Shown here piece after piece: positions 753-60,905 of a stretch of DNA of 64,000 nucleotides. Every line of letters starts with the position of its first letter. Position 1 is the first letter of the stretch. The stretch lies in sequence record PP885688.1; one strand, written 5' to 3'. The notes under the pieces are model-generated. The model did not search any database. It had not been told where the DNA came from and saw only the letters and a list, made by a program, of their open reading frames with translations. The position numbers and the translations under genes were made by a program.

Positions 753-788
753 TAATACCCACGCGAGAGGCCGATCCTGGATTATCGA
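753..788 (-). promoter_or_regulatory. Class I bipartite promoter motif
   Basis: TCGATAATCCAG-N16-GGGTATTA upstream of the phosphoesterase. Confidence 0.75.
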
Positions 789-801
789 AATGCTTTAATT
801 T

Positions 802-1416
802 TTACGAGAGGAAGTTGTCCATCTGTTGTGTAGCGATTCCGGTCAGTTTGACACTCGCCTTCTTGACCGAGGCGACCTGACGCTGGCCTTCGAGGGTGAC
901 TGGCTCCTTCGCTACAGGCTGCGTCGCCGGGACGGGATCGCGCGGGACGATCACATCGGCATCGACTGCGCCGCCACGGAAGCCGTGCTGCTTGAGGAAC
1001 TCATCCAGCCAGCTGTCGCTATCGGACAGAGCCAGGGTATCGAAGTCGTTGATCGTGACGCTGACGCCACCGTTACGCGCGTAGAGCCACTTGGTGCGAG
1101 TGTCATCGTTGCCAGCGCGGTAGGCGAACTCCTCGTTCTTGAGGACGACGCCGGAGCCGGTCAACAGGTCGATGGTCTCTCCACGGAAAGGGATGGCAAG
1201 AGCCACCTCGGTAGCCTTGGGGACAGTCTTGCCATCGGTCTCTTCCTCGTAGTCGCGCTCCAGTTCATCATTCGCCGCAGCGAGAACCGAATCCTTGATC
1301 GTGATGCCATACAGGAAGAAGCTTTCGTTGCTGCTATCTTCGGTCAGACGTTCGACAAGGGCCAGCCCAGGACGGGCAGACTGCAGTTCTTCTTCGGTAA
1401 CGGTAAAGTAGCGCAT
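802..1416 (-). CDS. Hypothetical protein (204 aa)
   Basis: Start MRYFTV at 1416 with GGAGAGG RBS; phage-like codon usage. Confidence 0.7.
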   Translation of the reverse strand: MRYFTVTEEELQSARPGLALVERLTEDSSNESFFLYGITIKDSVLAAANDELERDYEEETDGKTVPKATEVALAIPFRGETIDLLTGSGVVLKNEEFAYRAGNDDTRTKWLYARNGGVSVTINDFDTLALSDSDSWLDEFLKQHGFRGGAVDADVIVPRDPVPATQPVAKEPVTLEGQRQVASVKKASVKLTGIATQQMDNFLS

Positions 1417-1432
1417 GGGTTGAGAACCTCTC

Positions 1433-2077
1433 CTATAAGGAAAGGGATAGTTGTTTGGCATCCCAGAGGTGTTGGAACACCCGGATGGACTGCTGCTTGA
1501 GGAGGTCCAGGTCGCCGTCGGGGATCTGGAGATGAACCTCGAACGGGGCACCATCCAGCTCGGTCTCGGACACGTGGGCCGGTACGCCGGACTCGAAGTT
1601 CAGGCGTTCCACCTTGATCCGTGTGCCCATCAGCTCGCCAATGAGGTGGAACTCGTTCCAGAAGCGCATGTCCCGGAAGAACAGGACATCAGCTCCATCG
1701 CGACGGGCCTCCTCGACCAGAGCCCGGCCCTTGGAGGTCCAGTACTGCGGATCCTGGGCGCGGCGGTACTCGGTACCCCACCACTGGAGCAGGACGCGCT
1801 GCTTGCCCCATGGGTAGGTCTCATCTTCCGGGGCGTTGGGATCGTAGGGCTGGTTGTAGAAGTCGCAGACCAGCTCCAGAGCCCGGTGCCCGTTGAAGAG
1901 TCGATGTGGGTAAGTACGTTCCCAGATTTTGAAGGCCTCATCGGTCACCTCCGCACGAAGCGGATCAGCGAACGAGTGTAGCCGGATGTCTAAAGTTTCA
2001 CCGAAGTGTTCCTTCACTGTGGCCGCGAAGGTGTCCTTCCCGTGTCGTGCTTTGTGACCCAAGCCGATCAAGAGCAT
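1433..2077 (-). CDS. Deoxynucleoside monophosphate kinase (phage dNMP kinase family)
   Basis: IGLGHKARHGKDT P-loop, LLQWWGTEYRR and DMRFWNE motifs; TGATG coupling to the upstream ORF. Confidence 0.85.
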   Translation of the reverse strand: MLLIGLGHKARHGKDTFAATVKEHFGETLDIRLHSFADPLRAEVTDEAFKIWERTYPHRLFNGHRALELVCDFYNQPYDPNAPEDETYPWGKQRVLLQWWGTEYRRAQDPQYWTSKGRALVEEARRDGADVLFFRDMRFWNEFHLIGELMGTRIKVERLNFESGVPAHVSETELDGAPFEVHLQIPDGDLDLLKQQSIRVFQHLWDAKQLSLSL

Positions 2078-2397
2078 CAGAGATTCCTCGGTTCGTAGTA
2101 GGCGATGGTGAGTGTGTCTTCCTCGCGCAACTCGAAGTCTTTGAGCTTGTCGGCCAACGCGAGAACCCCACACTCCTTGAGCGTGTTGAAGGCATCGTCG
2201 TAGGCCGACAGGCGGTTGTAGGCTTCCTCGACCGGCACCAGCACCGAGATCCGCTCGATGTAGGGAGGCTCGAGATTGTGTTCGGTCTTGAGCGCGTGGG
2301 AGTGGATATGTTGGGGATCCCACGTGTTGTAGACCAAGCGAACCTTGACGTAACCCGGGAGTGTCCGGGCCACGTCAAGGGCGATGGGTGTGCTCAT
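2077..2397 (-). CDS. Hypothetical protein (106 aa)
   Basis: ORF coupled to neighbours on both sides. Confidence 0.7.
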   Translation of the reverse strand: MSTPIALDVARTLPGYVKVRLVYNTWDPQHIHSHALKTEHNLEPPYIERISVLVPVEEAYNRLSAYDDAFNTLKECGVLALADKLKDFELREEDTLTIAYYEPRNL

Positions 2398-3917
2398 TTC
2401 TTGTTTTCGAAGGACCAGTTGAGGAACGTGATCAGTCCGCCGAATGAGGCGAGGCCGAGCGTTCGCTGCAGGCTGGAGAACGAGTGCTCGTTGATCAGCA
2501 ACGAAGCGATGTAGAGGATCGCGACGAAGACTGCAACAGCGAGGACCGCGTTGAACACGCTGAAGAACGAGCTGTTGTTCTCGGCAGCGATGATCTCGCT
2601 GGCCGTAACCTCAGCCTGAGTCTTCTCGATCTCAGCCGCTTCCTCTTCGATCTCCGCGCCGGTCAGGTCAAAGCGCAGACCAAGCAGGGCCTCGATCTCA
2701 CTCTTGAGCGCTTCCTGCTCTTCGAGGAGATAGTCGAGCCGCTTGTCCTGAGCCTTCTGGCGTTCGCCGAGGCCGATGATGTGATCGTGCAGCTGGGAAG
2801 CTTCGAGCTCGTGTGCCGGATCCTTCTCAGGAACATCGGACACCGATCCCAGGCCGAACTCCAGCTTGAGGATGTTGAGCGCCAGGGGACGCTGCGTGAT
2901 GCGCTCGGCCAGATCTTCGATCGCATCTTCTGCGTCGTCGATCGCGTTTTCGTTGGCGTCGATGTTGGTGTAGGTACGCTTCTCCAGGTAGGAGAGGTAC
3001 TCCAGACGGGCGGCGCGGGACTTGATGCAGCGGTCGATCATGTAGACCTTGAGCTCAAGCGCACGCTTCTCCGCTTCGGCGTTCGCAGCTTCCTCTTCAG
3101 GAGTGAACGAACGAACGGCGACGGACTCTTCGGCGACCTCAGCAACCGGAGCAACCTCAGGAGCAGGGGCCTGCTCATTGCCAGAGGTCTGCTCGACCGC
3201 TTCGGCTACAGGTGCCTGGGTGAAGTAGGAAGCGATGGTCTCGTCTTCAGAGACCGAGGCAGGACTGATCTCGATGTCTGCCTCAGCGACGGCGACAGCT
3301 TCAACCTCAACCGCAGGCAGAGCCTCGGCGGCTTCGGTGACGACGTCGGTTGTCTCGTCGAGGACGATCGGACCACCGGAAACCTCGGCATCGGGATCTG
3401 GCATGAGCTCATCGACGATGGTCTTGACGTCTTCTTGGCTGGTCAGATCGACCGTGTTGATGTTGAAGGCTTCGCTGATGTCGAGGGAGTCTGCAAGCGC
3501 CTGCTGCGACGCGCGGACGAGCACTGCTGCAAGCTTCGGAGCAGGCCGGTGGGCGCGAACTGGGATGGGTGCGTGCTCGACCGCCGCTTCAGCCGGGTTG
3601 GGGCCGTTGTAAAGCGATGCGTAGGCTTCGTCGCTCGTCTGCTTGTCAGCATCAACCGGCTCTTCCGCCTCAACGTCGCGGATCACTGTCAGGCTGAGGA
3701 AAGAGATCGTCTCTTGCTTCGGTTTCTGACGACCGCGACCACGGGCCGCCACGTCAAGGATTACGCGGCCAGACTTCTTCGCAAGAGCCGAAGCATCTTC
3801 CGGGGTAAGAGCTGCTACGGTGAGGTTGAAAAGTGGAACATCTTTGCCGGACTTCTCGGACTTCTTGTAGTCCGACTCCCGGTAGTAGGTAACTTCGTAG
3901 TTCTTAGTCTTCGGCAT
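2394..3917 (-). CDS. Acidic coiled-coil protein with two C-terminal TM helices (507 aa)
   Basis: Glu/Ala-rich middle, heptad-like region, hydrophobic C-terminus; GGAGG RBS and a class I motif upstream. Confidence 0.75.
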   Translation of the reverse strand: MPKTKNYEVTYYRESDYKKSEKSGKDVPLFNLTVAALTPEDASALAKKSGRVILDVAARGRGRQKPKQETISFLSLTVIRDVEAEEPVDADKQTSDEAYASLYNGPNPAEAAVEHAPIPVRAHRPAPKLAAVLVRASQQALADSLDISEAFNINTVDLTSQEDVKTIVDELMPDPDAEVSGGPIVLDETTDVVTEAAEALPAVEVEAVAVAEADIEISPASVSEDETIASYFTQAPVAEAVEQTSGNEQAPAPEVAPVAEVAEESVAVRSFTPEEEAANAEAEKRALELKVYMIDRCIKSRAARLEYLSYLEKRTYTNIDANENAIDDAEDAIEDLAERITQRPLALNILKLEFGLGSVSDVPEKDPAHELEASQLHDHIIGLGERQKAQDKRLDYLLEEQEALKSEIEALLGLRFDLTGAEIEEEAAEIEKTQAEVTASEIIAAENNSSFFSVFNAVLAVAVFVAILYIASLLINEHSFSSLQRTLGLASFGGLITFLNWSFENKK

Positions 3918-3937
3918 CTGCGAAAACCTCCACAGGT

Positions 3938-3973
3938 CAATACCCTCTGGAGGGGCCGAAACTGAATTATCAA
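3938..3973 (-). promoter_or_regulatory. Class I bipartite promoter motif
   Basis: TTGATAATTCAG-N16-GGGTATTG, back to back with a class II motif. Confidence 0.7.
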
Positions 3974-3996
3974 AATGAAAAAACTTTTCTTATTAC

Positions 3997-4031
3997 AAAT
4001 TCATCTTTGGCTTTTCTTGGTCCGTAGGTTG
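3997..4031 (+). promoter_or_regulatory. Class II bipartite promoter motif
   Basis: AAATTCATCTTTG-N13-CGTAGGTTG, followed by an RBS and the ATG at 4051. Confidence 0.75.
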
Positions 4032-4050
4032 TAATTGAGGGACATTCAAC

Positions 4051-4404: not shown

Positions 4405-4460
4405 CTCTCCCCCATCACGAGCGGCCCGGCGCTATATCCGGCAAAGGAACGGGTGCACGC

Positions 4461-4694: not shown

Positions 4695-4695
4695 C

Positions 4696-4730: not shown

Positions 4731-4747
4731 AGTAAGAGGACACAGCC

Positions 4748-5182: not shown

Positions 5183-5193
5183 ACATTCCAAAA

Positions 5194-6289: not shown

Positions 6290-6762
6290 TAGATACGTGC
6301 TCCTCGCACCCTGAGGGCCAGCATGACGTCCGCGTCCATCGGAGGATGGTTTCCCAGCACACAATCCACAAGCAGCTTGCGCAGCGGCTTAGGATCGTTC
6401 CCTTCGCGAATAGCATCGGCCACCACGCGCACGGCGATACCACGGGAGACCGTTGGGCCCATCGTCTTCACGAACGCGCCCCACACCCCTCCTATGTCGT
6501 TGTTGATGGCATTCACGCAGTCGTTGATGACTGGCGTCTCCAGCTTGTAAGAGAGACCCAGCGTCGTCGCAGTCCGCTCCATGGAGGAGAGATCCGGAAT
6601 GACCAGGGTGAACTCACGATTCGGATACCGGCGGAGGACGAGACGCTCGACCTTAGTGTTCGTCCAGGAGACGGTGACGGCTTCATTGCTGAGAGGCAGC
6701 AGAGGTTCCATCTCGATGATGCCGGGACCGCCGTAGTTCTTCTGGACCTTGAGAGTGATCAT
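6289..6762 (-). CDS. Hypothetical protein (157 aa)
   Basis: ATGA overlap with the BCS1-like gene. Confidence 0.7.
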   Translation of the reverse strand: MITLKVQKNYGGPGIIEMEPLLPLSNEAVTVSWTNTKVERLVLRRYPNREFTLVIPDLSSMERTATTLGLSYKLETPVINDCVNAINNDIGGVWGAFVKTMGPTVSRGIAVRVVADAIREGNDPKPLRKLLVDCVLGNHPPMDADVMLALRVRGARI

Positions 6763-7988
6763 GCCTTACCCCTGGAAGCCATAGCCTGCGCGTCGGCAAT
6801 CGTTGTCTGCTCGGGCAGGGAAGCGCGGAACTCCTCCCATGACTTCTGCGGGAAGTACTCGGAGACCTTGTCGTAGAACCGGCGGAGCTCTTCTTCGCGG
6901 GCGAAGTCGACCACGAACTTGCGATCGATCCGGCCTGAGCGAACCAGTGCGGCGTCGATCTTCTCGGGCTCGTTCGCCGTCATGAAGATGATCCGGTCCT
7001 CACTGGCACCGAGACCGTCGATCGCATTCAGCAGATCAGACATGGTGATGCGTGCGTCCGATTCGCTCTCACGCGTCTGGGCGGCGGCGATACAGTCGAT
7101 ATCCTCGAAGACGACGATGGATGGCTTGGAGCACTGGTTGAGCAACTGGGACAGGCGCTCTCCATCCATACCCGTCGCCTGTAATGCCACAACGTAGACC
7201 GGCAGTTTCAGATGGGACGCGAGAGCGAGGATCATCGTAGACTTGCCGGTGCCCGGAGGTCCGGAGAGCTGGTAGCCCTTGCGGTACGGGAAGCCAAGCG
7301 CAGCGTACGCGTCCTTGCTCGCGAGGAACTTTTTGATATCGGCAACGATCTCGTCAATCAGCTCCGGCGGATAGAACGTGGTGTCGAGCTTTCGCGGCGA
7401 TATGGGCGAAGGCTCCCAGTTGCCATAGAGGTATCTGTAGAGGTCGACGTGCGGCGGCATGTTGGCGAGATAGTCGGCCTGGGCCTCGGCGAGGATGTCC
7501 ATGATGATCTCCCGGCGACGCGTGAACCATACCTGGATCCGCAGCCAGTGCATCTTCTTCGTCGTACCGGCAGCAGCTCCGGCAGGTGTAGCTTCATCCG
7601 GCCAGTGGTCGATGATCATCGGCAGCTTGTGCTTCCAGCGCATGTAATAGGTGCCATACGCGGGGATCAGACTGTAGCCGGGGCTGGATCCTTTGTGCTT
7701 GCGCTGAGAGGGTGAGTCGTCGTTCCGTTCCTTATTGCGGCGGAGCAGAAGAGCGCTGATACCCCGCGTCTTGAGGTGCTTCTCGACCCAGTGGCTCACC
7801 CATGCGTAAGCCTCGGGGTCGTCGTTGTCTTCCACGGTGATCGTCAGGCTGACTTTGTTGATGGCCCAGCCGATGGTGTGCTTGTAGATGAAGTCCCAGG
7901 CAGATTTGAGGCCGCCCGTCACCACCCCGACGCCAAGAATGGCCCAGGGTGGCACGGACTTCAGGAAGGCGGGTGATGTCAGAGGCAT
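6759..7988 (-). CDS. BCS1-like AAA+ ATPase (N-terminal TM, BCS1_N-like domain, AAA)
   Basis: N-terminal hydrophobic segment; TITVEDNDDPEAYAWV; Y.ALGFPYRKGYQLSGPPGTGKS; VVFEDID; LLNAIDG; FMTAN; DAALVRSGRID. Confidence 0.85.
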   Translation of the reverse strand: MPLTSPAFLKSVPPWAILGVGVVTGGLKSAWDFIYKHTIGWAINKVSLTITVEDNDDPEAYAWVSHWVEKHLKTRGISALLLRRNKERNDDSPSQRKHKGSSPGYSLIPAYGTYYMRWKHKLPMIIDHWPDEATPAGAAAGTTKKMHWLRIQVWFTRRREIIMDILAEAQADYLANMPPHVDLYRYLYGNWEPSPISPRKLDTTFYPPELIDEIVADIKKFLASKDAYAALGFPYRKGYQLSGPPGTGKSTMILALASHLKLPVYVVALQATGMDGERLSQLLNQCSKPSIVVFEDIDCIAAAQTRESESDARITMSDLLNAIDGLGASEDRIIFMTANEPEKIDAALVRSGRIDRKFVVDFAREEELRRFYDKVSEYFPQKSWEEFRASLPEQTTIADAQAMASRGKA

Positions 7989-9899: not shown

Positions 9900-10198
9900 G
9901 AGATTACGTAGATCCCGTCTTCGGTCTCGTCGTCGCGGTCGTCCTGGAACTCGTCGTCGAACTCATCGTCGTCCTCGAAGTCCTCATCGTCCTCGTCGAA
10001 ATCGTCCTCATCTTCGTCGTCATCGTCGAAAATGGGGTCGGTGCCGTCGAAATCGCTATGTTCTTCGTCGTCTTCGTCGAAAAACTCATCGCCGTCCTCA
10101 TCGAGGCAGCTCAACGGGGCGAACGGGTGAAGTGGCGACATTGCCAGTAGGTGGAACGGTAAGTAAGGTGCTATTCCTGCGACGATCACTTCGGTCAC
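9896..10198 (-). CDS. Highly acidic (Asp/Glu-rich) small protein
   Basis: GTG at 10198 with GGAGG RBS; run of D/E/F residues. Confidence 0.6.
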   Translation of the reverse strand: MTEVIVAGIAPYLPFHLLAMSPLHPFAPLSCLDEDGDEFFDEDDEEHSDFDGTDPIFDDDDEDEDDFDEDDEDFEDDDEFDDEFQDDRDDETEDGIYVIS

Positions 10199-10214
10199 GA
10201 GAACCTCCACTCGC

Positions 10215-10250
10215 TAATACTCAAAATGGGGGCGCTTACCCAATTACTGG
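10215..10250 (-). promoter_or_regulatory. Class I bipartite promoter motif (variant)
   Basis: CCAGTAATTGGG-N16-GAGTATTA. Confidence 0.6.
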
Positions 10251-10252
10251 GC

Positions 10253-12256
10253 TCACATTCCCCAACGATTTTGTTGCTCCTCGAAATCCGCATGCAGAGA
10301 CGGCTTGACCTTCTTCGGTTTGGCACCCTCTTCGAAGACCATCTTGCGTTCGTCGTCGGCCTGGGCCTCGGCCAGCTGCGACCCACCGATGAAGGAGTTG
10401 AGGCTGACTGACTTGGTGTGGGCCTTCATCAGGGACAGGAACTCGGAGTCCTTCGCTGACTGCTCCATACCGGAGGCCATGTCGAAGATCTCGCGGTCGT
10501 CGAGCAGACCGGCGGAGTGACTCTCGCCGAGGATCTTCTCGAACAGCCCCTTTTTGCCCTTCAGCGTCTCGATCGCGTACTCATCGACCGTCCCGCGTCC
10601 GACCAGGCAGTGCAACGTGCAGGCGGAGTGCGGGCTGGCCATACGGACCATGCGGCCCACCAGCTGCAGCAGATCGCCCCAGCTCCAGCACATGTCCAGC
10701 TTGATCAGGTGGGCCGCCTGCTGAAGGTTCACGCCCTCGGTGGCCGCCGCGTTGATGAAGATGAGATCGTGGTCGCCATCGGGATCCTGGAAGAGGCGCT
10801 TGGCCTGGCTGCGCTGATCCTCGTTCTCCGCGCCGGTGATGCGCAGGAACTTCCGGTCCGTGAAGTGTCCCTCTTTGGTGAGCCACTCCAGCCGGTCGAT
10901 CCACGACTTCGACTTGGTGTAGACGATGACCTTCTCACCACGGAAGTCGCCGTCGAGCATGTCGAGCAGGGCCTCCTCTTTCGGTGAGAGGGTGCGGGTG
11001 AGGAACTTCTTCTTGTCGTTCACATCCAACAGCGCCGGGTGGTTGGCGACCAGCTGGTAGACCGAGAGCATCGTCATCTCGTTCTCTGGATCACGGTCGC
11101 GCGTGATGATCTCGCCATGCAACTTGATCACCGAAGGCGGCAGTTGGTACTTGCCGGACGGAATGTCCTCAAGCAGTAGTCGAGCCTGCTCCGGGTCGAG
11201 GTCGATCGGATGGATGATGGTGGTGAGGCGGGGTAGCTTCTCTTTGACCTGGCGCTGGGACCTGCCTAGAAAGAAGGGACGCATACCGGCCTTGAAGGTG
11301 GCGACGTTGCGATAGCCCTCAAGGACCTTCTTATGCTTGCCCTTGCCGATGAAGACGTTGCGGAAGATACAGAACCGCTCTTCAAACTCTGCCGGGACAC
11401 CGAACGGCTTGATCCCGATGGCCGAGGCGATCGAATACATCTCGTCGAGGCCGTTCTTGATGATCGTGGCCGTCAGAGCGTGGACGCGGGCGCAGGGCCT
11501 GGCGAGGATCTGTACCATGTTGCGGGTTGCGCCGCCGAGCGTCTTGAACTTCTGGCACTCATCGAGCACCATCAGTACGTCCTGGCCGTAGGGCTTCAGG
11601 ATCTTGATGAACTCCTTCACCTCGGAGGCAACGCGCTCACGCCCGTTGACCGTGGGATTACCATCAGCGTCGAACTTGCCCTCGACCTTCTTGCGTGTCC
11701 CCACCATCGAGGAGTACTTGCAAATCAGAACGTCGTGGTCATCCTTGGCGAGGAAGTCGGAGAGCTGGGCGAAGCGAGCTTCATACGACTTCAGCTTGTT
11801 GTACTTGTCTTTCATCACCGTGGTGCGCAGCGTAGAGAAGCGCTGATATTCGTCAGCCCACTGGCCGGTCGTCGACTTCGTCGTGAAGACGATGATCTTG
11901 AGGCGGGGCAGGCGATCTGTGAGCCAGCAGTGACTGATGATGGACTCGAGAGTCTTGCCTAGGCCTACTGAGTCCCCGTTGATGAAGCGGGGCATGCGGG
12001 ACATCGTCTGCGCCATCTGCAACTGGTACTGCTTGGGCTCCAGGACGACGCCGGTGTCGCGCTCACGGATGATGTCCCAGAGCGTGGTGCGAAGGCGTGT
12101 AGGCCACTTGAATGGGACTGGTCCATCGTCTGGGATCTTCCAGTTGCGAAGCTTGAACAGCTTCACCATGAGATCGTCCGGCAGACCTAGCTCCCGGGTG
12201 AAGGGAGTTATCAGCGGACACAGCTCTTCAACGTCGTCGTAAGTAGAAAGGGTCAC
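10253..12256 (-). CDS. SNF2-family (SF2) helicase/ATPase
   Basis: GDSVGLGKT, LDECQKFK, LTAT, EKVIVYT, TEGVNLQQA, QLVGRMVR. Confidence 0.9.
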   Translation of the reverse strand: MTLSTYDDVEELCPLITPFTRELGLPDDLMVKLFKLRNWKIPDDGPVPFKWPTRLRTTLWDIIRERDTGVVLEPKQYQLQMAQTMSRMPRFINGDSVGLGKTLESIISHCWLTDRLPRLKIIVFTTKSTTGQWADEYQRFSTLRTTVMKDKYNKLKSYEARFAQLSDFLAKDDHDVLICKYSSMVGTRKKVEGKFDADGNPTVNGRERVASEVKEFIKILKPYGQDVLMVLDECQKFKTLGGATRNMVQILARPCARVHALTATIIKNGLDEMYSIASAIGIKPFGVPAEFEERFCIFRNVFIGKGKHKKVLEGYRNVATFKAGMRPFFLGRSQRQVKEKLPRLTTIIHPIDLDPEQARLLLEDIPSGKYQLPPSVIKLHGEIITRDRDPENEMTMLSVYQLVANHPALLDVNDKKKFLTRTLSPKEEALLDMLDGDFRGEKVIVYTKSKSWIDRLEWLTKEGHFTDRKFLRITGAENEDQRSQAKRLFQDPDGDHDLIFINAAATEGVNLQQAAHLIKLDMCWSWGDLLQLVGRMVRMASPHSACTLHCLVGRGTVDEYAIETLKGKKGLFEKILGESHSAGLLDDREIFDMASGMEQSAKDSEFLSLMKAHTKSVSLNSFIGGSQLAEAQADDERKMVFEEGAKPKKVKPSLHADFEEQQNRWGM

Positions 12257-12262
12257 TTGGGC

Positions 12263-12298
12263 TAATACCCAAGCGACCCTCGTTTACCTGATTATTGA
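12263..12298 (-). promoter_or_regulatory. Class I promoter motif, leaderless geometry
   Basis: TCAATAATCAGG-N16-GGGTATTA, 6 nt before the GTG. Confidence 0.8.
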
Positions 12299-12302
12299 AG
12301 CT

Positions 12303-12584
12303 TTAGGAGCGACGAAATACAAAAGCTATCTCTTCGTTGGTCTGCTTGACCTGCCTAAGCTCCGAAGTGGTTGTGGATGCCGGATACGATACTCCTACGT
12401 GTGCGCAGGGATAGCTTGTAACAAGAACCCAGCCCTCCCGGGAAAGGGAATCGAACACAGAAGGAAGATGACCGTCACCGCCGTTGTTCTGAAGCTCGTC
12501 GGGGTATTCGTCGATGCCGTCACCGATCAGACGGAACGAGCCGTCCCTACGTGAGTAAAATCCTATTGCATGCTTTGCAGCCAT
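12303..12584 (-). CDS. Hypothetical protein (93 aa)
   Basis: Start MAAKHA at 12584. Confidence 0.6.
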   Translation of the reverse strand: MAAKHAIGFYSRRDGSFRLIGDGIDEYPDELQNNGGDGHLPSVFDSLSREGWVLVTSYPCAHVGVSYPASTTTSELRQVKQTNEEIAFVFRRS

Positions 12585-17525: not shown

Positions 17526-17574
17526 TTTTTCTTATCCTCGTAAAAGTGCCACTCTTGTGGCGACTGATACTGGT

Positions 17575-17610
17575 TGATACCCAAAAAAGCTTTCCGACCC
17601 TGAATATCAA
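17575..17610 (-). promoter_or_regulatory. Class I promoter motif
   Basis: TTGATATTCAGG-N16-GGGTATCA upstream of the helicase operon. Confidence 0.75.
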
Positions 17611-17656
17611 AATGAAGATATCTGTGGAAAACTTTGTTTCTTGGCTGCTGGATGAG

Positions 17657-22679: not shown

Positions 22680-22710
22680 ATCTCCTCGTCGGGCAAAGCC
22701 AGACTTTCGC

Positions 22711-22746
22711 TAATACCCTCGGAGGAGGTCGTTCCCTGAATATCGA
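22711..22746 (-). promoter_or_regulatory. Class I promoter motif
   Basis: TCGATATTCAGG-N16-GGGTATTA; would drive the FlbD-like gene and the ligase C-half. Confidence 0.8.
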
Positions 22747-22758
22747 GGCAAGTTTTTT

Positions 22759-23370
22759 CTAGTAGTAGTTCTTCTGCCGCAGCTCGGATAGAGCGTTCAG
22801 GTCGAACCGCTGCGCCGGGCTCCCCAGGTTGACCGGCAGCTGGAGATAGTCGACGATCTGGCGGATGTAGTCGAACCCGAGCGTCAGCTCCACAGTCTGC
22901 CCACGTAGATTGCCCTGGATGATTCCGTCCATGACGCTGGCGGCCTCATGGCTGTCTTGGACGCGGCCCTGCTGATGGTAGGCGAAGCTTTTGTCACGCG
23001 GGTGGTAGAAGGTGAGGTTGTTGTAACTATCCCAGTACTCATGAACCGTGTTGCGAAATGCCTGGGTGCCACCCTGCTTCGAGTACACGATACCAAGCAG
23101 CAGCGGGCTGTCCGTGATGACGTAATCAGTAGCGTGACGCAGACGATGCAACCGTCTGTTTTGCTTGGCGAGGATATAGAGCTGATCGGCCAGGATGTTG
23201 GAGCGATCCTCGTAGACCATGTCTTCCGCGTATTCCTGCACGTATTTGACGCGGAGGCCTGCACGCTTCATGAAGTAGCTGAGGCCGAGGGCTGTGCACG
23301 TCTTCCCGGTGTTCGGCCCGCCGATCAGATTGATGATCGTCGCGCCCTTCTGCTGGTCTTGCTGGCTCAC
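22759..23370 (-). CDS. NadR/AAA_28-type P-loop nucleotide kinase
   Basis: INLIGGPNTGKT, VQEYA, VITDSPLL, YHQQGR; GTG start with GGAG RBS. Confidence 0.8.
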   Translation of the reverse strand: MSQQDQQKGATIINLIGGPNTGKTCTALGLSYFMKRAGLRVKYVQEYAEDMVYEDRSNILADQLYILAKQNRRLHRLRHATDYVITDSPLLLGIVYSKQGGTQAFRNTVHEYWDSYNNLTFYHPRDKSFAYHQQGRVQDSHEAASVMDGIIQGNLRGQTVELTLGFDYIRQIVDYLQLPVNLGSPAQRFDLNALSELRQKNYY

Positions 23371-24258: not shown

Positions 24259-24845
24259 GCCTGGCCCGCCGCTTCCGCCGCAGCGGCCTCTGCCGACTCC
24301 GCAGCCTTCTTCACCGCACGTGCAGCCTTCTCGGCGTCAATGATTGCGTAGTACTCGGAGATCCGCAGCTCGGTGCAGCCAGTGGGGACGTCGGTGCCGC
24401 CGGGGGTGCAGAGAATGGTCTTGTCCCCGTAAACGCCGAAGGTTGCCCAGTACATGCTGTTGCCTTCCCACTTGGTGAAGGTCTGGCCGAGAGCCCGTTC
24501 GAGCATGCCGGTGAAGCCTAAGCTGTCAGGAGCCGAAGGGATCTCGTCGATCATCTTCGCGATGGCCTTACCCGCCTTCGTACGCTTGGCGGGAACGTAG
24601 TAGTCGCCGTCGAAGCGCCAGCCCTCAGGGACCTTACCTTCGGGGAAGCCGCAACCGACAAAGTAGGCGCTACCGTCGCCGCGAATCAGGAGGCGATCTG
24701 CACCTTGCTCTTTTTCAAAGGCTTCTAAGATTCCGACTCGGATTTCGGTCTTGGCGGTGGCCTCGTTGATGACGGCAAGTGCCGGTGCATCGGGTCCAAC
24801 CAGATAGTAGATGTGATCGCTCATTCGGTATTGCTCCTCGGCCAC
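24255..24845 (-). CDS. Hypothetical protein (~190 aa; start may be 24824)
   Basis: Class I motif upstream. Confidence 0.7.
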   Translation of the reverse strand: MAEEQYRMSDHIYYLVGPDAPALAVINEATAKTEIRVGILEAFEKEQGADRLLIRGDGSAYFVGCGFPEGKVPEGWRFDGDYYVPAKRTKAGKAIAKMIDEIPSAPDSLGFTGMLERALGQTFTKWEGNSMYWATFGVYGDKTILCTPGGTDVPTGCTELRISEYYAIIDAEKAARAVKKAAESAEAAAAEAAGQA

Positions 24846-24862
24846 ATAAGCGGCTCAAGGGG

Positions 24863-24898
24863 TAATACCGTTCGGGGTGGCCTGACCCTGATTATTGG
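24863..24898 (-). promoter_or_regulatory. Class I promoter motif
   Basis: CCAATAATCAGG-N16-CGGTATTA. Confidence 0.75.
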
Positions 24899-24914
24899 GT
24901 CAGCTTTTTATTGC

Positions 24915-27139: not shown

Positions 27140-27182
27140 GTCTGGGTCCCTTTCACGGCGAAAAAAGCCCGCCGTCTTTGAC

Positions 27183-27218
27183 TAATACCCATTCGCGGGG
27201 CCGGAAAGGGATTATCGC
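27183..27218 (-). promoter_or_regulatory. Class I promoter motif
   Basis: GCGATAATCCCT-N16-GGGTATTA. Confidence 0.7.
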
Positions 27219-27219
27219 G

Positions 27220-27609
27220 TCAGCTTATTTTCTGACTCTCGTGAGCGGGATCCTCAGCAGCTCTGCCCGTGCCCTGGCATGCAGCGCAACCCATAAACTG
27301 CTTGTAGATGCCCATGAAGTTCTTCTCGCCCATCGGGATCTCTCCCTTACCCTCACACAGGGTGCAGATGAGCAGCAGGCGGCGTAGTTTCCGGTCGTAG
27401 ATCCCACGCGATGTAGCGTGGCCGACCACCAGCATCGCTTCGTTGTACTGCTGCAGCTTCAGAATGAGCTGAGACCACTTCATGCTGGTCCAAGCGTGAT
27501 GCTCCGGTGGGAAGCATTCCTTCGCCAGCAGCCAGTACGCTTTGTGGATGACGTCCTGATCGTCGCCAGGGCGGACGCCAAGTGTGTCATAGTGCGTGTG
27601 CGTGCTCAC
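27220..27609 (-). CDS. DnaJ-like protein (J-domain lacking HPD, plus DnaJ-type CxxCxGxG repeats)
   Basis: THYDTLGV...IHKAYWLLAKECFPP; YNEA..V.G....RGIYD; CTLCEGKG and CAACQGTG. Confidence 0.7.
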   Translation of the reverse strand: MSTHTHYDTLGVRPGDDQDVIHKAYWLLAKECFPPEHHAWTSMKWSQLILKLQQYNEAMLVVGHATSRGIYDRKLRRLLLICTLCEGKGEIPMGEKNFMGIYKQFMGCAACQGTGRAAEDPAHESQKIS

Positions 27610-31121: not shown

Positions 31122-31138
31122 ATCGCCCTCTCACTTGC

Positions 31139-31174
31139 TAATACCCAAGAGGAGGGTCGGTCCCTAAATATCAA
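31139..31174 (-). promoter_or_regulatory. Class I promoter motif
   Basis: TTGATATTTAGG-N16-GGGTATTA. Confidence 0.8.
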
Positions 31175-31207
31175 AAATAAATATTTTCGGGACCGAATAA
31201 GCCTTTG

Positions 31208-31648: not shown

Positions 31649-31664
31649 TACTACCTCCACTCTC

Positions 31665-31700
31665 TAATACCCAGTGGAGGACCCCGACCCTGATTACTAA
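31665..31700 (-). promoter_or_regulatory. Class I promoter motif
   Basis: TTAGTAATCAGG-N16-GGGTATTA. Confidence 0.75.
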
Positions 31701-31966
31701 AACGCTTCTTCGTTCTCGTAGATCAATTCGTAGATCCGATAGCGCTGTTCGGGGGATTTGTCCTTGGAGTCAGCCAGGTATTTCAGGTAGCGTTCAAAGC
31801 GCTCCAGCTCGACGCGGTCGCCTACCGAGATCTCTTTACCCGGTGCAGGCCGCATGTGCATTCCTGGGAAGGCGGTGAGCAGTACGCCGCAACCGGGGCA
31901 GTCCCCGTTGGGCTTGACGTACTGCATCAGCGTGCAGCGTTCGCAAAAGACGGGATTACTTGCCAT
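31697..31966 (-). CDS. Small zinc-ribbon hypothetical protein
   Basis: CERC...CPGC. Confidence 0.6.
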   Translation of the reverse strand: MASNPVFCERCTLMQYVKPNGDCPGCGVLLTAFPGMHMRPAPGKEISVGDRVELERFERYLKYLADSKDKSPEQRYRIYELIYENEEAF

Positions 31967-41123: not shown

Positions 41124-41209
41124 GTGATGCTCCTTTGAACGGTTCCTGGTTGAGGGCATCCGGTTGGCTCGGCCAAGCAGGTCCCAACGCAATAGCGCGT
41201 ACAAAGGGG

Positions 41210-41245
41210 TAATACCCACCCACCGGGCGGCAGGGGGATTATTGA
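41210..41245 (-). promoter_or_regulatory. Class I promoter motif
   Basis: TCAATAATCCCC-N16-GGGTATTA. Confidence 0.7.
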
Positions 41246-41269
41246 AGAGAGAATATTTTTGTGGAAATC

Positions 41270-43789: not shown

Positions 43790-44254
43790 TCAGATCTGCG
43801 TCTTGCAGTCGTAGCACTCGGTGTATGGCATGCCGATCGTCGTACGCTCGACCTTGATCGGATGCTTACACTCACGCAGCTCGTAGCCGGTTCCGTCACA
43901 CTTCGGACAATCCTTCGCGGACTCGCCGGGCGTTCCATCCAGCTTCCCGGGCGTTCCCGGGATCAACCCGGCGGAGCAGCCATGCACACATGGCCGCGAG
44001 TAGTCACGCTGAGATTCGTTACGGAGAACACCAAAGGCCTCAACGCCCGGCTGGATCGTTAGATTCTTGGCAACCTCACGGCCTTGTTCCTCGGTAAGTA
44101 CGCCATACACCATGGATCCCCCAAACTCATTGGTGAGGGTGATCGTGATCTTTGGACCCACCACATCCGAGAGGGCCTGGACGGCGGTCAATAGGGCGGT
44201 GTGGTACGCGGCGTCATAGTTCGTCGAGGTAGGGTTCCAGGTATCAAGTGGCAT
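43790..44254 (-). CDS. Hypothetical protein with C-terminal Cys clusters, leaderless
   Basis: CVHGC, CPKCDGTG, C.H and C..C motifs; ATG 6 nt after a class I motif. Confidence 0.7.
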   Translation of the reverse strand: MPLDTWNPTSTNYDAAYHTALLTAVQALSDVVGPKITITLTNEFGGSMVYGVLTEEQGREVAKNLTIQPGVEAFGVLRNESQRDYSRPCVHGCSAGLIPGTPGKLDGTPGESAKDCPKCDGTGYELRECKHPIKVERTTIGMPYTECYDCKTQI

Positions 44255-44260
44255 GGTGGC

Positions 44261-44296
44261 TAATACCGCCGTACAGTTCGGTTCAGCGGTTATCGA
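44261..44296 (-). promoter_or_regulatory. Class I promoter motif, leaderless geometry
   Basis: TCGATAACCGCT-N16-CGGTATTA. Confidence 0.7.
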
Positions 44297-44493
44297 TTGG
44301 AATTATTTTCGACGCGCTCCAGCTTCGCGATCGGATACTTGAACCACTCCAGGTTGGTGTCTTTCAGATTGATGCTGGCTGTACCGGCCTCGTGGTCGAT
44401 CGCCGTGATGATGCAGATCGCGCGAGTATCTGAGTCGGTGCGGTAGACCTTCTCTCCTACCTTGAGTGGCGGCGGTGTCTTCTTCGTGGCCAT
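44290..44493 (-). CDS. Small SH3/KOW-like hypothetical protein
   Basis: LKVGEKVY......ITAID....ASI pattern. Confidence 0.55.
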   Translation of the reverse strand: MATKKTPPPLKVGEKVYRTDSDTRAICIITAIDHEAGTASINLKDTNLEWFKYPIAKLERVENNSNR

Positions 44494-46948: not shown

Positions 46949-46951
46949 GGC

Positions 46952-47158: not shown

Positions 47159-47926
47159 TACGTGGGCTCCTAGACTGATGCGGCTTCGTCGCCGCTGAAC
47201 AACACGACAAAAAGGCGAACGATCAAAAGCAATCGAATCAAGGAGATCAGGGGGTCGCGTGAACCCGATAGTTGCATGATCGAATCTTGTAAAAAGCGGC
47301 CCCTCACTCGGGAGGGGCCAATCTGCCTTGGATCTCTCCGGTTAGGAGAGGCTTCTGCAGTGTGCGTTCTAAGCCGCTTCACTGCAAACTGATAAGCGCG
47401 AACGCTAATGTGTGAGGTAAAGGAATCTGGCTCGGGAACTGGGACCAGCGAGCGCATGGGACCTGGAGGCGGATCAACCATGTGCTCGAAGGTTATGTCC
47501 CAGCCCTCGGGCGGTCTGCCGGTCCAGCCGGGCACAGCAAAGCTGCGGGGATCGACTGCTTCCCTGCCTGATTGCTTACGGCTTGCCTGGGGAGGACGTA
47601 CGGAAGACACCGAGAATTGCTGGCCCAAATCTTCTTGCATGTGCAACTTTCTAAAGGGACTATCCACCGTGGTTGCTGGGGGACAAGTAAAAAGTTATGC
47701 CAGATTTGTGGGTCGCGTCAAAGTAATATCCGTGACAAATATGTGATATCTCGGCGGAAAACTGCTCATTTGTAAAAGTTTAGTCTTGTGGAAACTTTTT
47801 TGAGAGCTGCCACGGACTCGTCCGCTAATCGTTCATGATCCGAACTAACTTCCAACTAAAGTTGTAGGCAGGTAAATCCGGATTGGCCGATCCCCTGCTC
47901 CGGATCAGTCGATCTCCAGCGGGGGC

Positions 47927-48292: not shown

Positions 48293-48655
48293 GCGGGCAG
48301 TGTACCACCTAGTGCGATGTATGTCGCGCTGTATAGCGGCAGAGGGTTCCACCACCATCGTACACAAATCGAAACGCTAAACCCCTTTCGGGGAGGAGTG
48401 GGCGGCTTGGCGCTATACATCGCGCTATACGTCTGTATTTCATAGGCCCGACTACGACAGAAGTGGTCTAGTGGTATGGAAGTGGTCTTCGCTTTTTAGA
48501 ATGTATAAAATTTGATGGCATCAAACGGCTTATTTGTGGAAAGCCTGTGGGAGGGATGTGGACGCTGTGAATCGCGCCCAGGTTGCCCTCGGTGCGACCG
48601 ATGGCCACCTCAAGTATGTGGTCCTATTTCATTGATAATAGGTGAGTTCGGAAAC

Positions 48656-48862
48656 GGTGCACTTCTGCGTATGAACGCCTAGGCAGGCAGGAGTTTCCAT
48701 CGATCCGGGCTCAATGGATAGAACACGGTGCACTTCCACGTAGAACGGTGCACTTCTGCGTATGAAGCCAAAAGCGCTTTGGTGCACTTCTGCGTATGGA
48801 TCCGTGCACCTCTGCGTAGGCTATATATAGAAGCAGTATTAACATTAGTTTTTTAAACCACT
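48656..48862. repeat. Iteron-type replication origin: 5 direct repeats GTGCACTTCTGCGTA plus AT-rich tract
   Basis: Copies at 48656, 48727, 48747, 48781 and 48803, then CTATATATAG...TTTTTTAAAC, directly downstream of repA. Confidence 0.85.
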
Positions 48863-48887
48863 ATGTGGAGCAGTAGTGGGTGTCGCT

Positions 48888-54639: not shown

Positions 54640-54680
54640 GTTTCCTCATCAGGCCTCTAACTAAAACGACCAATGAGGGG

Positions 54681-54716
54681 TAATACCCAAGCGAGGTGCC
54701 CGGCAGTGAATATCTC
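54681..54716 (-). promoter_or_regulatory. Class I promoter motif
   Basis: GAGATATTCACT-N16-GGGTATTA. Confidence 0.75.
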
Positions 54717-54738
54717 CGAAAAATAAGTTCCAGACGCA

Positions 54739-57368: not shown

Positions 57369-57386
57369 GGTGATACCTTTCGGGCG

Positions 57387-59089: not shown

Positions 59090-59129
59090 GCTGATGGCGG
59101 ACTGTCTCACAGGACCGCCGCCGGGATGT

Positions 59130-60128
59130 TCACCACTCCGTCCCGCTTGGGGTTTTGAGAGCGATCCCGATGAGACGGTCGGTGCCAGCTTGGTACATCG
59201 GCGTACCCTCAGGAATCTCGCGCGTCTCAGGCTTCTTCGCCGGGATGTAGATGTCCGTTGCGAACATGCCGCAGGCGGAGGCGATGTCAGCGCCGGGGCT
59301 GTCATACCACTCGGTGGGGATGCCCAACTCTTCGAGCATCGAGCGGAAGTACTTCGTCCACTCCTCGTCAGGGGAGAGGTGGGGATCACCAGGGGCTGGG
59401 TTGTACTTGAGGAACTTGACTGGAATCTTCGACTCGACGAGGAGGCTGCGGAGAGTCCATCCATCGCGGACCGTGTCATTGACGCCGTCGATCAATGTGT
59501 AGTGGATCTCTACAGGGTTGCCGGTGAGCCTGCGGTAGTCGCTGAGCATGTAGAGCGCTTGCGCGATCGAGGTCGCTGTGGGCATCCACTCCAGACGCTT
59601 GGCATTGTTTGTATAGTGCAGCGACAGATGTACCTTTACCGGCAGCCGGAGACCGGCGATCGTGTTGATGAAGTTCTGGAAGTCCGCTACGTGCTTGAAA
59701 GGCATCATCGTGGCAAGACCGAAGCGCACGTTGAGGTTGATGAGCGCTCCCCAGCCACGAAGGCGGATCATTGCGTGAATCAGTTCAGCGGTGTTCGCCA
59801 TCGGCTCGCCTACGCCCATGAAGGAGACCAGCAGGTCGCCTTCGGTTTCGGCGAAGCCAGCGTCAACGAAGGCCTCGCGGGCGATACTCTCGATCTCGAA
59901 ACGGGTGAGGTTGGTGACCGCTACCTTACCGGCGAGACCAGTCGTGTGACAGAACTTGCAGGCCTGAGCGCAGTTGGTTTGGGTGGGGAGGCAGAGGATG
60001 ACCTTGCCGTCCTGCTTATCAATGGCACTCACCTCGATGGTGGTGTCACCGCTTGGCCGGGCGAGCGTATAGATCAGCTTTTGCGTCCGGTCCTTCTGAG
60101 AGTGGATCCTGTCCTGCAAGGTAAGCAT
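59130..60128 (-). CDS. RlmN/Cfr-family radical SAM RNA methyltransferase
   Basis: ILCLPTQTNCAQACKFCHT (CxxxCxxC plus the upstream Cys), SFMGVGEP, LSLH, YTLIDGVND, GADIASACG. Confidence 0.88.
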   Translation of the reverse strand: MLTLQDRIHSQKDRTQKLIYTLARPSGDTTIEVSAIDKQDGKVILCLPTQTNCAQACKFCHTTGLAGKVAVTNLTRFEIESIAREAFVDAGFAETEGDLLVSFMGVGEPMANTAELIHAMIRLRGWGALINLNVRFGLATMMPFKHVADFQNFINTIAGLRLPVKVHLSLHYTNNAKRLEWMPTATSIAQALYMLSDYRRLTGNPVEIHYTLIDGVNDTVRDGWTLRSLLVESKIPVKFLKYNPAPGDPHLSPDEEWTKYFRSMLEELGIPTEWYDSPGADIASACGMFATDIYIPAKKPETREIPEGTPMYQAGTDRLIGIALKTPSGTEW

Positions 60129-60134
60129 GAGGGC

Positions 60135-60170
60135 TAATACTCAAAAACTGAGCCTCGCCCTCAATTCGAA
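60135..60170 (-). promoter_or_regulatory. Class I promoter motif, leaderless geometry
   Basis: TTCGAATTGAGG-N16-GAGTATTA, 6 nt before the ATG. Confidence 0.7.
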
Positions 60171-60176
60171 AAGAAT

Positions 60177-60437
60177 TTATTTCTTCGGTCCCTGGATACA
60201 GACTTCGATGTCACCGGCCTTGAAGGTCAGGGCCTTACCCTCACCAAGTTTGGCGAGTGTCTCGCGGTTGAGTCCGACACGAACTTTGCGTACGGGCTGC
60301 TCCTCGGTGTGTTCACCGAAGACCTTTGCGAATAGGCTGTTGGGTCCCTCGAACGTGCGACCGAACAGACTATCGGGTCCGTCGAAAGTCTCCTCAAAGA
60401 TGGAGCGTGGCTTGGGGGTGGGTGCTTTCTTAGACAT
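60177..60437 (-). CDS. Hypothetical protein (86 aa)
   Basis: Coupled ORF. Confidence 0.65.
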   Translation of the reverse strand: MSKKAPTPKPRSIFEETFDGPDSLFGRTFEGPNSLFAKVFGEHTEEQPVRKVRVGLNRETLAKLGEGKALTFKAGDIEVCIQGPKK

Positions 60438-60723
60438 ACTTTCCTTTCACCTCAAACCGGCGACGCTTGATATCCGCGATCGAGATCATGGGCATCGATG
60501 CGATCTCGAAAGTAGGAACAGTGACGCGCCTGGGCACGGGCTGGATTGCTACAGGGTTGAAGACCATGGACGGCATGATCTCTTTCATCGACTCACCGAT
60601 CGCACGAAGATCTGGCTTCGGTGCCGGGGCAGGGAAGAGCTGCATCATCCACTTTGGCGCTAGCGCGAACGCCAGGGCGACAAGGGGAAAGCGGAAGAAC
60701 TGGCGACGTGTCATGGTCTGCAT
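60430..60723 (-). CDS. Small Tat-signal protein
   Basis: MTRRQFFRFPLVALAFALA. Confidence 0.6.
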   Translation of the reverse strand: MQTMTRRQFFRFPLVALAFALAPKWMMQLFPAPAPKPDLRAIGESMKEIMPSMVFNPVAIQPVPRRVTVPTFEIASMPMISIADIKRRRFEVKGKYV

Positions 60724-60725
60724 CG

Positions 60726-60839
60726 TTAGACCTTCGTTCGGATCCGCTTGACGAACGAGCGGAGGTAGGCGAGCAGACGTGCACGCCGGGTTGGCTTCGG
60801 CTTCACGTAGTACATCGGTAGCGGTTTATAGAGGCCCAT
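60726..60839 (-). CDS. 37-aa basic peptide (MGLYKPLPMYY...)
   Basis: GGAG RBS after a class I motif; not in the ORF track. Confidence 0.5.
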   Translation of the reverse strand: MGLYKPLPMYYVKPKPTRRARLLAYLRSFVKRIRTKV

Positions 60840-60869
60840 GAATGATCTCCGTTGGGAGGTACTCTTCTC

Positions 60870-60905
60870 TAATACCCACGCGGAGGGCTCGATCTTGAAT
60901 ATCGA
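60870..60905 (-). promoter_or_regulatory. Class I promoter motif
   Basis: TCGATATTCAAG-N16-GGGTATTA. Confidence 0.8.

Follow-up and report, generated by a model that had tools for sequence, protein, structure and literature searches.

A recurrent promoter-like cassette with predicted start-codon and Shine-Dalgarno-first transcripts in the Acidobacteriota jumbo phage Tunturi_5

The stretch of DNA analyzed here (64,000 nucleotides, called the window) is identical in sequence to bases 62001-126000 of Tunturiibacter phage Tunturi_5 (PP885688.1), a jumbo phage with a 308,711-bp genome and myovirus morphology that was obtained from Finnish tundra soil with Tunturiibacter psychrotolerans X4BP1 (Acidobacteriota) as isolation host. 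The window carries 16 copies of a signal of about 57 bases, which we call class I, and a weight matrix finds 66 copies in the Tunturi_5 genome. Our analysis confirmed that the class I motif is real and that it is positioned like a promoter. Most likely, the class I cassette is a promoter whose transcript would start 7 nt after its TATTA, often at the start codon itself. On the whole, we consider it probable that the host core RNA polymerase transcribes from class I cassettes with a non-housekeeping sigma factor, that many of the messages are leaderless or begin with a Shine-Dalgarno sequence (SD), and that at part of the sites a hairpin gates translation. We infer promoter activity, start site and translational gating from motif statistics, start-codon register, conservation and complementarity.

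Class I is a variant of known phage promoter cassettes and not a new kind of element, and it is undescribed both for Tunturi_5 and for phages of Acidobacteriota. To our knowledge, nothing is known about the transcription signals of viruses that infect this phylum, which is among the most abundant in soil. The words "promoter" and "sigma" are both absent from the paper that describes the phage (PMC11924767). Class I provides 66 testable start sites and, with two further motif classes, a probable three-step transcription programme; it would also offer ready, strong and compact promoter parts for a phylum without genetic tools.

Occurrence and architecture of class I

The motif was studied over the entire Tunturi_5 record. 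The position weight matrix (PWM) covered 59 positions, was built from 53 seed sites and then iterated, and the reversed sequence served as its control. The preliminary description of this DNA had reported 16 copies of the pattern RATAWTCAGG-N16-GGGTATTA in the window, all on the minus strand. Exact matches to the literal pattern occur at 2 window sites. When up to 3 mismatches are allowed, the pattern is found at 12 window sites, every one on the minus strand, against 0.02 expected from shuffled sequences, and GGGTATTA alone occurs 10 times in the window, again always on the minus strand, against 0.36 expected. The PWM returned precisely the 16 copies that had been listed, including four degenerate ones at 3938, 10215, 44261 and 60135 (34.6-39.3 bits). 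Genome-wide, all 66 sites score above 20 bits and none lies between 8 and 20 bits, whereas the reversed sequence contains no site above 10 bits.

The arrangement of the copies is equally regular. The distance between the upstream box and the 8-mer, described earlier as an invariant spacer of 16 nt, is constant in 13 of 13 pairs in the window and in 39 of 40 pairs in the genome. Each of the 66 sites is co-oriented with its downstream gene and lies strictly between genes, so the sense orientation noted for the window extends to the whole genome. The restriction to the minus strand is true of the window and not of the genome, since plus-strand sites occur outside the window wherever the genes are on the plus strand. 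Class I serves mainly genes of replication and nucleotide metabolism and tRNA genes.

We numbered positions in the cassette from the first G of GGGTATTA (index 0), which puts the predicted transcription start (+1), 7 nt past the last A of TATTA, at index 14. Sequence logos show four parts. An A/T tract lies at index -40 to -33 (-54 to -47), the zone where UP elements lie. It is followed by an upstream, -35-like box, TC-RATAWTC, at index -28 to -20 (-42 to -34), whose RATAWTC portion spans -40 to -34, and by a G+C-rich, semi-conserved spacer. The -10 box, T-GGGTATTA-(G/C)C, occupies index -1 to 9 (-15 to -5), with GGGTATTA at -14 to -7. In at least 4 sites by strict rules, and in a few more by eye, the A/T tract is at the same time the T-run of an upstream terminator hairpin.

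Two copies outside the window stand back to back, at record positions 44405(-) and 44476(+). They would drive the dUTPase gene (gp47) and gp48, respectively, both with predicted leaderless messages, and their upstream boxes overlap in a palindrome centred on an EcoRI site.

Predicted start sites and conservation in relatives

The position assigned to +1 has the base composition of a start site. Among the 53 seed sites, index 13 is a pyrimidine in 41 and index 14 a purine in 47; over all 66 sites, a pyrimidine-purine (YR) step is present at -1/+1 in 46. At 16 sites a start codon that opens a long open reading frame (ORF) lies precisely at index 14 (ATG in 15, GTG in 1), and 13 of these are the starts given in GenBank. 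Four further sites have GTG at index 14, which brings the sites with a start codon at +1 to 20 of 66. A second peak of start codons lies 10-16 nt past +1, and there GGAGG or GAGG begins at +1; a GGAGG-type SD opens at the predicted +1 in about 21 of the 66 sites. The other sites have longer leaders, and some stand directly upstream of phage tRNA genes. Because class I precedes tRNA genes, it is not a translation signal.

For four window genes the preliminary description had placed the start codon exactly 6 nt after GGGTATTA, with no ribosome-binding site. These start codons, at 12256 (GTG), 13703, 44254 and 60128, are the GenBank-annotated starts of gp94, gp97, gp145 and gp170, and none of the four has GGAGG within the 6 nt. 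The conclusion then drawn, a promoter with +1 at the start codon and a leaderless mRNA, is supported by the YR step, by the 20 starts in register and by the preservation of the register in relatives, and we regard these messages as probably leaderless.

The 16 window cassettes are listed below, each from the predicted +1 (low coordinate) to the A/T tract, with PWM scores in bits and, for the pairing of the spacer with the sequence downstream of it, duplex energies in kcal/mol.

746..801, minus strand: +1 at 746, TATTA ends at 753; gp78 (phosphoesterase), annotated start 696; PWM 49.2, duplex -32.7, strong hairpin between spacer and downstream sequence
3931..3986, minus strand: GGAGG from the predicted +1 (3931); gp82 (virion structural protein), ATG at 3917, 14 nt on; PWM 34.6, duplex -23.2
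10208..10263, minus strand: GGAGG from the predicted +1; gp93, GTG at 10198, 10 nt on; PWM 38.7
12256..12311, minus strand: predicted leaderless, +1 at the annotated GTG of gp94 (SNF2 helicase, with SNF2 domains); PWM 36.5, duplex -27.5, hairpin of 18 pairs with TATTA in the loop
13703..13758, minus strand: predicted leaderless, +1 at the annotated ATG of gp97; PWM 51.4, duplex -19.7
17568..17623, minus strand: -10 variant GGGTATCA; predicted leader of 43 nt to the ATG of gp100 (helicase) at 17525; PWM 38.2
22704..22759, minus strand: gp109, annotated start 22676; PWM 47.3, exact match to the literal pattern
24856..24911, minus strand: -10 variant CGGTATTA; gp112, annotated start 24824, in-frame GTG at 24845; PWM 42.5, duplex -14.3
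27176..27231, minus strand: unannotated ORF of 155 aa (ATG at 27139) ahead of the ligase gene gp116; PWM 39.8, separate hairpin and T-run in the leader
31132..31187, minus strand: GAGAGGG from the predicted +1; gp125 (DUF3850 by Pfam), ATG at 31121; PWM 54.8, the highest score in the window, duplex -16.6
31658..31713, minus strand: GGAGG from the predicted +1; gp126, ATG at 31648; PWM 35.1, duplex -24.7
41203..41258, minus strand: gp139, annotated GTG start at 41219; PWM 44.1
44254..44309, minus strand: predicted leaderless, degenerate -10 GCGGTATTA, +1 at the annotated ATG of gp145; PWM 39.3
54674..54729, minus strand: predicted leader of 35 nt to the ATG of gp160 (620 aa, function not assigned) at 54639; PWM 45.2
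60128..60183, minus strand: predicted leaderless, degenerate -10 TGAGTATTA, +1 at the annotated ATG of gp170 (Fe-S / radical-SAM-like); PWM 35.4
60863..60918, minus strand: just past a terminator-like hairpin with a T-run; predicted leader of 24 nt to the ATG of gp173 at 60839; PWM 39.7

The predicted starts would revise several annotated start codons. The annotated GTG of gp139 (41219) lies inside the cassette, upstream of +1, and its true start is therefore probably downstream; a TTG lies 11 nt after +1. Likewise, ATGs at the predicted +1 at record positions 248839 and 261834 point to other starts for gp303 and gp321. A known phage message of this type is that of lambda cI made from PRM, which starts at the A of the start codon and has no SD. 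The class I transcripts are predicted to start in the same way, with the difference that here the arrangement is systematic. Systematic use of leaderless and SD-first messages, as predicted here, is unusual in a phage of a Gram-negative host.

The closest isolated phage, as judged by terminase, is merely 28% identical, and for this reason we sought relatives through homologues of gp3 and gp211, the two sigma-like proteins of Tunturi_5. Four relatives, L360, L361, L364 and L365, encode gp3 or gp211 homologues with 49-66% identity and carry the motif at orthologous places. L360 and L361 are syntenic with Tunturi_5 around terminase-gp2-gp3-primase-polymerase; they have the motif about 200 nt upstream of the gp3 homologue and also directly before the primase homologue, where the ATG at index 14 is the called start. 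In L364 and L365 the motif precedes the gp212-gp211 homologues, again with the index-14 ATG as the called start, and it recurs at two or three neighbouring orthologous places. At orthologous sites the two boxes are the best conserved parts, with identities of 84% (-10 box) and 76% (upstream box); the downstream coding sequence has 59%, the spacer 55% and the sequence further upstream 35%. Boxes, spacing and start register are conserved at orthologous sites and are therefore under selection.

Pattern scans of IMG/VR DNA, run with the correct spacing and then with a stricter pattern, gave single matches in AT-rich contigs only; none reached the score of the true sites, and no motif-carrying relative was found in this way. 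A pattern with one extra N, an accidental control, likewise gave only single chance matches, and a peptide-pattern scan of IMG/VR for gp94 gave no match.

The intergenic region between gp2 and gp3 (record 2443-3239) is an 800-nt non-coding region with several blocks common to three phages; the matching regions are L360 5627-6353 and L361 9314-10000, and among the conserved blocks is the 180-nt leader that separates the gp3 start from its class I site. This region may hold a regulatory RNA or further signals.

Candidate sigma factors, promoter classes and copies outside the phage

The class I boxes do not resemble those of housekeeping promoters. With the register set by the start codons, positions -12 to -7 are GTATTA, and the other possible register puts G or C, never T, at -7. 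The cassette has neither a housekeeping -10 box (TANNNT, with A at -11 and T at -7) nor a TTGACA-like -35 box, in agreement with the earlier remark that the motif does not match TTGACA/TATAAT. Promoters of sigma70 consensus in the genome were not above chance (1 match against 2 in the control). The preliminary description had proposed an element-encoded or a host alternative sigma factor as the reader and had suggested a search for sigma and RNA polymerase genes. That search succeeded for sigma factors, yielding two sigma-like proteins, and not for polymerase, whose catalytic motif is present in no ORF of at least 250 aa. Since no phage RNA polymerase motif was found, the host core enzyme must be used, and the two sigma-like proteins in the absence of a polymerase make an alternative sigma factor the natural reader. 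Both kinds of sigma factor remain as candidates.

The clearer of the two phage proteins is gp211, a sigma factor of the extracytoplasmic function (ECF) type (NCBIfam sigma70-ECF, 62.5 bits; Pfam regions 2 and 4). gp3 gave no family match and is sigma-like weakly: a model of a 66% identical homologue (pLDDT 74) retrieved nearly exclusively sigma factors from the PDB, none of them significant, and a profile alignment with ECF sigmas lined up region 2.4-like and 4.2-like motifs with a probability of only 7.6%. Both genes lie behind class I sites. The site at record position 153225 stands directly before the gp212-gp211 operon and has orthologous sites in L364 and L365.

Two further motifs bear on the assignment. 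The first, class III, consists of AAAGTCATCTTTGG, 12 nt and TGTAGGTTGAG, with an A/T tract upstream, and has 36 sites in the genome against 1 in the control; its window sites are at 4024(+), 4723(+), 18588(-), 18959(-), 19703(-), 29302(-), 35346(-) and 40516(-). Its -10 box, TAGGTT, obeys TANNNT, its upstream box is palindromic (CCAAAG-TCAT-CTTTGG), and most of its sites stand before small ORFans. At least 9 annotated ATGs, such as that of gp102 in the window, lie precisely 6 nt after it and would belong to leaderless messages; with the 20 class I genes, the pattern of a start codon at the predicted +1 thus extends to both classes. The relatives L363 and L364 also have class III, and 22 kb of host DNA contained none. 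In Tunturi_5, one copy precedes gp214-gp213-gp212-gp211 by 1 kb. The second is a candidate late-gene motif, GACTAC, 3-10 nt, TTTAG or TATAG, then purines. The 5-mers ACTAC, TTAGA, TATAG and TTTAG are enriched in 46 upstream regions of structural genes (p ~1e-5), which lie at record 174-212 kb (minus strand) and 262-303 kb (plus strand). A regular expression for the late motif performed worse than its control, and k-mer enrichment is the sole support for this motif.

The simplest reading of these data is a cascade of three classes, from III to I to late. Class III would be early and read by the host primary sigma factor, class I would be middle, expressing replication, nucleotide metabolism, tRNAs and both sigma genes, and the late class would form the third step. 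Given this reading and the class I site directly before the ECF sigma operon, gp211 is the first candidate. We therefore tentatively favour a phage sigma factor, gp211 ahead of gp3, as the reader of class I. Autoregulated ECF operons resemble this arrangement in their rigid spacer and in having the motif directly upstream of the operon, here that of gp211 and conserved in two relatives. They differ in that gp211 is second in its operon and that 66 targets, including tRNA genes, are far above the usual ECF regulon. ECF promoters generally have a -35 box with an AAC core and a -10 box with a CGT or GTC core. Class I has neither the AAC core in its -35 nor the CGT core in its -10.

Several observations weigh against our main reading or, more narrowly, against a phage sigma factor as reader. 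The upstream box, at -40 to -34, lies further upstream than the usual -35 hexamer, and it matches neither the ECF AAC core nor the GTTTAA of sigmaB-type promoters. gp211 stands behind its own candidate promoter, so that a separate trigger would be needed. A full-length copy of 51.7 bits is present in the host chromosome, and copies of 40-55 bits occur on Terriglobia-like contigs with no sigma gene in view. As for gp3, no class I site lies within 20 kb of its homologues in bacterial mobile elements and in L372, a phage that is syntenic but more distantly related.

An alternative keeps the same promoter and the same +1 and has them read by a host group-3 sigma factor of the sigmaB/sigmaF type. 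Class I would then depend on the host and be expressed early or early-middle, and its products would include both phage sigma genes. SigmaB-type promoters read GTTTAA-N14/15-GGGTAT (PMC9847131, PMC8346170). GGGTAT is near-invariant in the class I -10 logo, so the two share an identical -10 hexamer, with the start about 8-10 nt after it and thus at a similar distance. The location of both phage sigma genes behind class I sites, the 51.7-bit copy in the host strain, the copies before helix-turn-helix (HTH) and integrase genes in Terriglobia-like DNA with no phage present, and the lack of a phage polymerase and of sigma70-consensus promoters are all in favour of a host factor. However, the positions of GTTTAA read TCAGGG, TCACCC or similar in class I, the RATAWTC box lies about 5 nt further upstream, and the -10 conservation extends to GGGTATTA(G/C)C; moreover, no group-3 sigma was identified in the phage, where gp211 is of the ECF type. 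The host DNA itself holds one site in 22 kb and one strict match in the 6.1-Mb genome, and the spacer and A/T tract of the host copy are phage-like, which points to common descent of a mobile cassette and not to a host regulon. Class III, with its TANNNT-type -10 box TAGGTT and its small ORFans, is better suited to a host-dependent early role. We regard a host alternative sigma as possible and somewhat less likely than a phage sigma factor.

Copies outside the phage were sought by scanning 185,579 species genomes with a 34-bit pattern. The 72 matches are at chance level, and one of them lies in the chromosome of the host strain X4BP1. Of the 72, the X4BP1 copy is the only one to reach 51.7 bits with the full matrix, which also covers features that the search pattern did not contain. 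It is located at L284 1681-1717 and L367 ~9614 (CP132941.1 near 2,865,700), between a sugar transporter gene and a 79-aa HTH-like ORF, behind which comes hrpB; integrase remnants and tRNA-Phe are close by. No other class I site lies in the 22 kb of host DNA. A metagenome scan recovered the same host locus in related bacteria (L342, L348, L350) and three further high-scoring sites. In L328 (~2455-2514) and L331 (~2423-2482) 3 nt separate a class I copy of 50.1 bits from the downstream ATG of a gene for a 492-aa protein with HTH and tyrosine-integrase regions, and a divergent GmrSD_N gene adjoins. For the copy in L330 and L355, a reading of its context as the end of an IS66-type transposase gene was dropped, as Pfam gave no support.

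The outside copies have the spacer and the A/T tract in common with the phage copies, which suggests that whole cassettes may pass from one element to another. These copies may speak for a host sigma, or they may belong to islands that respond to a phage sigma. A more specific form of the second reading, which we think improbable, is that they are phage-sensing switches: chromosomal islands would carry the middle promoter of the phage, and their excision or defence genes would be switched on by the sigma factor of an infecting Tunturi_5-like phage. Satellites are alike in that they respond to signals of a helper phage.

An attempt to link class I to gp3 by co-occurrence failed, as there are gp3 homologues without a nearby class I site. 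In bacterial mobile elements (L369, L370, L371, L363) gp3 homologues lie beside Tn7-like tnsA/tniB/tniQ; other settings are right behind a phage-type integrase that adjoins trp genes, and near resolvases. No class I site was found within 20 kb of the gp3 homologues on L369, L370, L371 and L363. At the gp3 locus of L372 (9790-9840) the upstream box is retained (TCAGTAATCAC), and 19 nt downstream GCGAATGC replaces GGGTATTA; GCGAATGC may be a diverged -10 box that changed together with its sigma factor.

The spacer hairpin and its proposed role in translation

Between a third and a half of the sites have a spacer whose 3' part, often together with TGGG, can pair with the first 10-20 bases of the predicted transcript. 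Examples are the pairing of GGCCTCTC with GAGAGGCC and, in the cassette at 31658, that of the spacer CCTCCAC with the downstream GTGGAGG. As a control we used chimeras in which the two halves, 5' and 3', came from different sites. Folding of index -18 to 33 gave -15.6 kcal/mol for the real sites and -12.5 kcal/mol for the chimeras (p = 1.4e-5), and the mean duplex energies were -15.1 and -11.9 kcal/mol, respectively (permutation p <= 5e-5). Duplexes of -16 kcal/mol or lower were present in 24 of the 66 sites, compared with 14.5% of the chimeras. Pairing was strongest in the sub-class with an SD at +1 (mean -18.6 kcal/mol). The strong stems have 8-20 pairs and loops of 5-11 nt, and a T-run follows the stem in only about 5 of 32 strong hairpins. 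A terminator role for the hairpin was rejected as a general explanation, since it fits merely these 5 or so of the 32 strong stems.

The 3' arm crosses +1 in 26 of the 32 strong hairpins. Therefore, RNA initiated at the promoter lacks the 5' arm, and the stem is possible only in read-through RNA or in DNA. These features suggest a gating mechanism, in which read-through RNA from upstream would form the hairpin and bury the SD or the start codon, and in a few cases the hairpin would act as a terminator; the gene would thus be translated mainly from its own class I promoter. Two observations limit this proposal: the hairpin is weak or absent in about half of the sites, and at one orthologous site the changes are, by eye, non-compensatory. 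Since a convincing stem is missing from about half of the sites, the hairpin is an optional addition that plays no part in promoter recognition.

A similar arrangement is known for the T4 genes e, soc, 49 and I-TevI, where a hairpin carries the promoter in its 5' strand or loop and the SD or AUG in its 3' strand; the longer upstream transcripts are silent and the transcripts from the late promoter are translated (PMC3014915). The T4 gating concerns a handful of late genes with the TATAAATA promoter read by gp55, whereas in Tunturi_5 the gating geometry recurs, as an option, throughout a class of 66 members, and its effect on translation is predicted. If the gating is true, the silencing of read-through transcripts known from T4 would be used genome-wide in an unrelated giant phage.

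The closest parallel in layout is given by the PeSL cassettes of the T4-type phages RB49, phi1, PST and nt-1. These composite, intergenic elements occur in about 50 copies per genome and are conserved over 60-100 bp; an AT-rich tract precedes the -35 box, a stem-loop may overlap the -35 and -10 boxes or sit between them, an SD and start codon lie at the 3' edge, and the stem is thought to stop or attenuate upstream transcription (PMC2839356, PMC4122927). With its 66 copies, its A/T tract and its stem-loop at the boxes, class I has an equal layout. It differs in that PeSL promoters are early promoters of sigma70 consensus, while class I departs from the housekeeping -10 rule; in that a third of its copies are predicted to be leaderless and most of its stems are without a T-run; and in that its host belongs to Acidobacteriota. 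The spacer sub-families and the homologous copy in the host chromosome are hints only of a PeSL-like recombination or shuffling.

Taken together, these results support the promoter reading of the preliminary description, which had overlooked the hairpin, the sub-class with an SD at +1, the upstream A/T tract, the copy in the host chromosome and the likeness of the -10 box to the sigmaB-type GGGTAT.

The hairpin can also be given a different meaning. The NATAAT of the upstream box might be a housekeeping -10, with transcription starting near CAGG, and GGGTATTA would then be the conserved loop of a hairpin in the 5' untranslated region that masks the ribosome site as long as neither an RNA-binding protein nor a nuclease acts on the hairpin. 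GATAAT, AATAAT and GATATT do resemble TATAAT, GGGTATTA lies in or beside the loop of a hairpin that is statistically supported, and the phage has proteins annotated as RNA-binding. However, conservation within the box peaks at its third and fourth positions (T, A), and 11 of 53 sites have G at what would be -11. Neither a -35 signal 17 nt upstream nor a YR step at the implied start is present. About 20 genes would have an SD-less AUG within the stem, yet the distance of these start codons from the motif is exact, and relatives preserve it. The hairpin is missing from about half of the sites, although their boxes and spacing are constant. Rfam gave no match at gathering thresholds over the full window, so class I belongs to no known structured RNA family. 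This explanation seems to us quite unlikely.

We give even less credence to class I as an operator for a phage DNA-binding protein, or as a repeat that mediates gene shuffling, with no promoter activity. The boxes show a weak inverted similarity (TAAT-C and TAATAC), and the spacer sub-families together with the host-chromosome copy hint at mobile cassettes. A plain operator or recombination site is nevertheless disfavoured, because it predicts neither the strict co-orientation with genes in intergenic positions, nor the YR step at the predicted +1, nor start codons or SDs in exact register. Least credible of all is a DNA-hairpin promoter of the N4 type, with the stem extruded in supercoiled DNA and the -10 box as a single-stranded loop: the -10 box is in or beside the predicted loop in the strong cases, but N4 early promoters have a stem of 5-7 bp and a loop of 3 nt and are read by a virion polymerase, whereas no phage polymerase was found here, the stems of 8-20 pairs and loops of 5-11 nt are unlike those of N4, and half of the sites have no stem.

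No tRNA genes were found in the window. Three other features of the window were noted. Two large stretches that are gene-free by annotation, 47159-47926 and 48293-48887, lie in a slightly G+C-poorer region, and the first of them contains an unannotated ORF of 165 aa at 47170-47667. gp90 (window 6759-7988), which is named "major head protein", carries BCS1_N and AAA ATPase domains.

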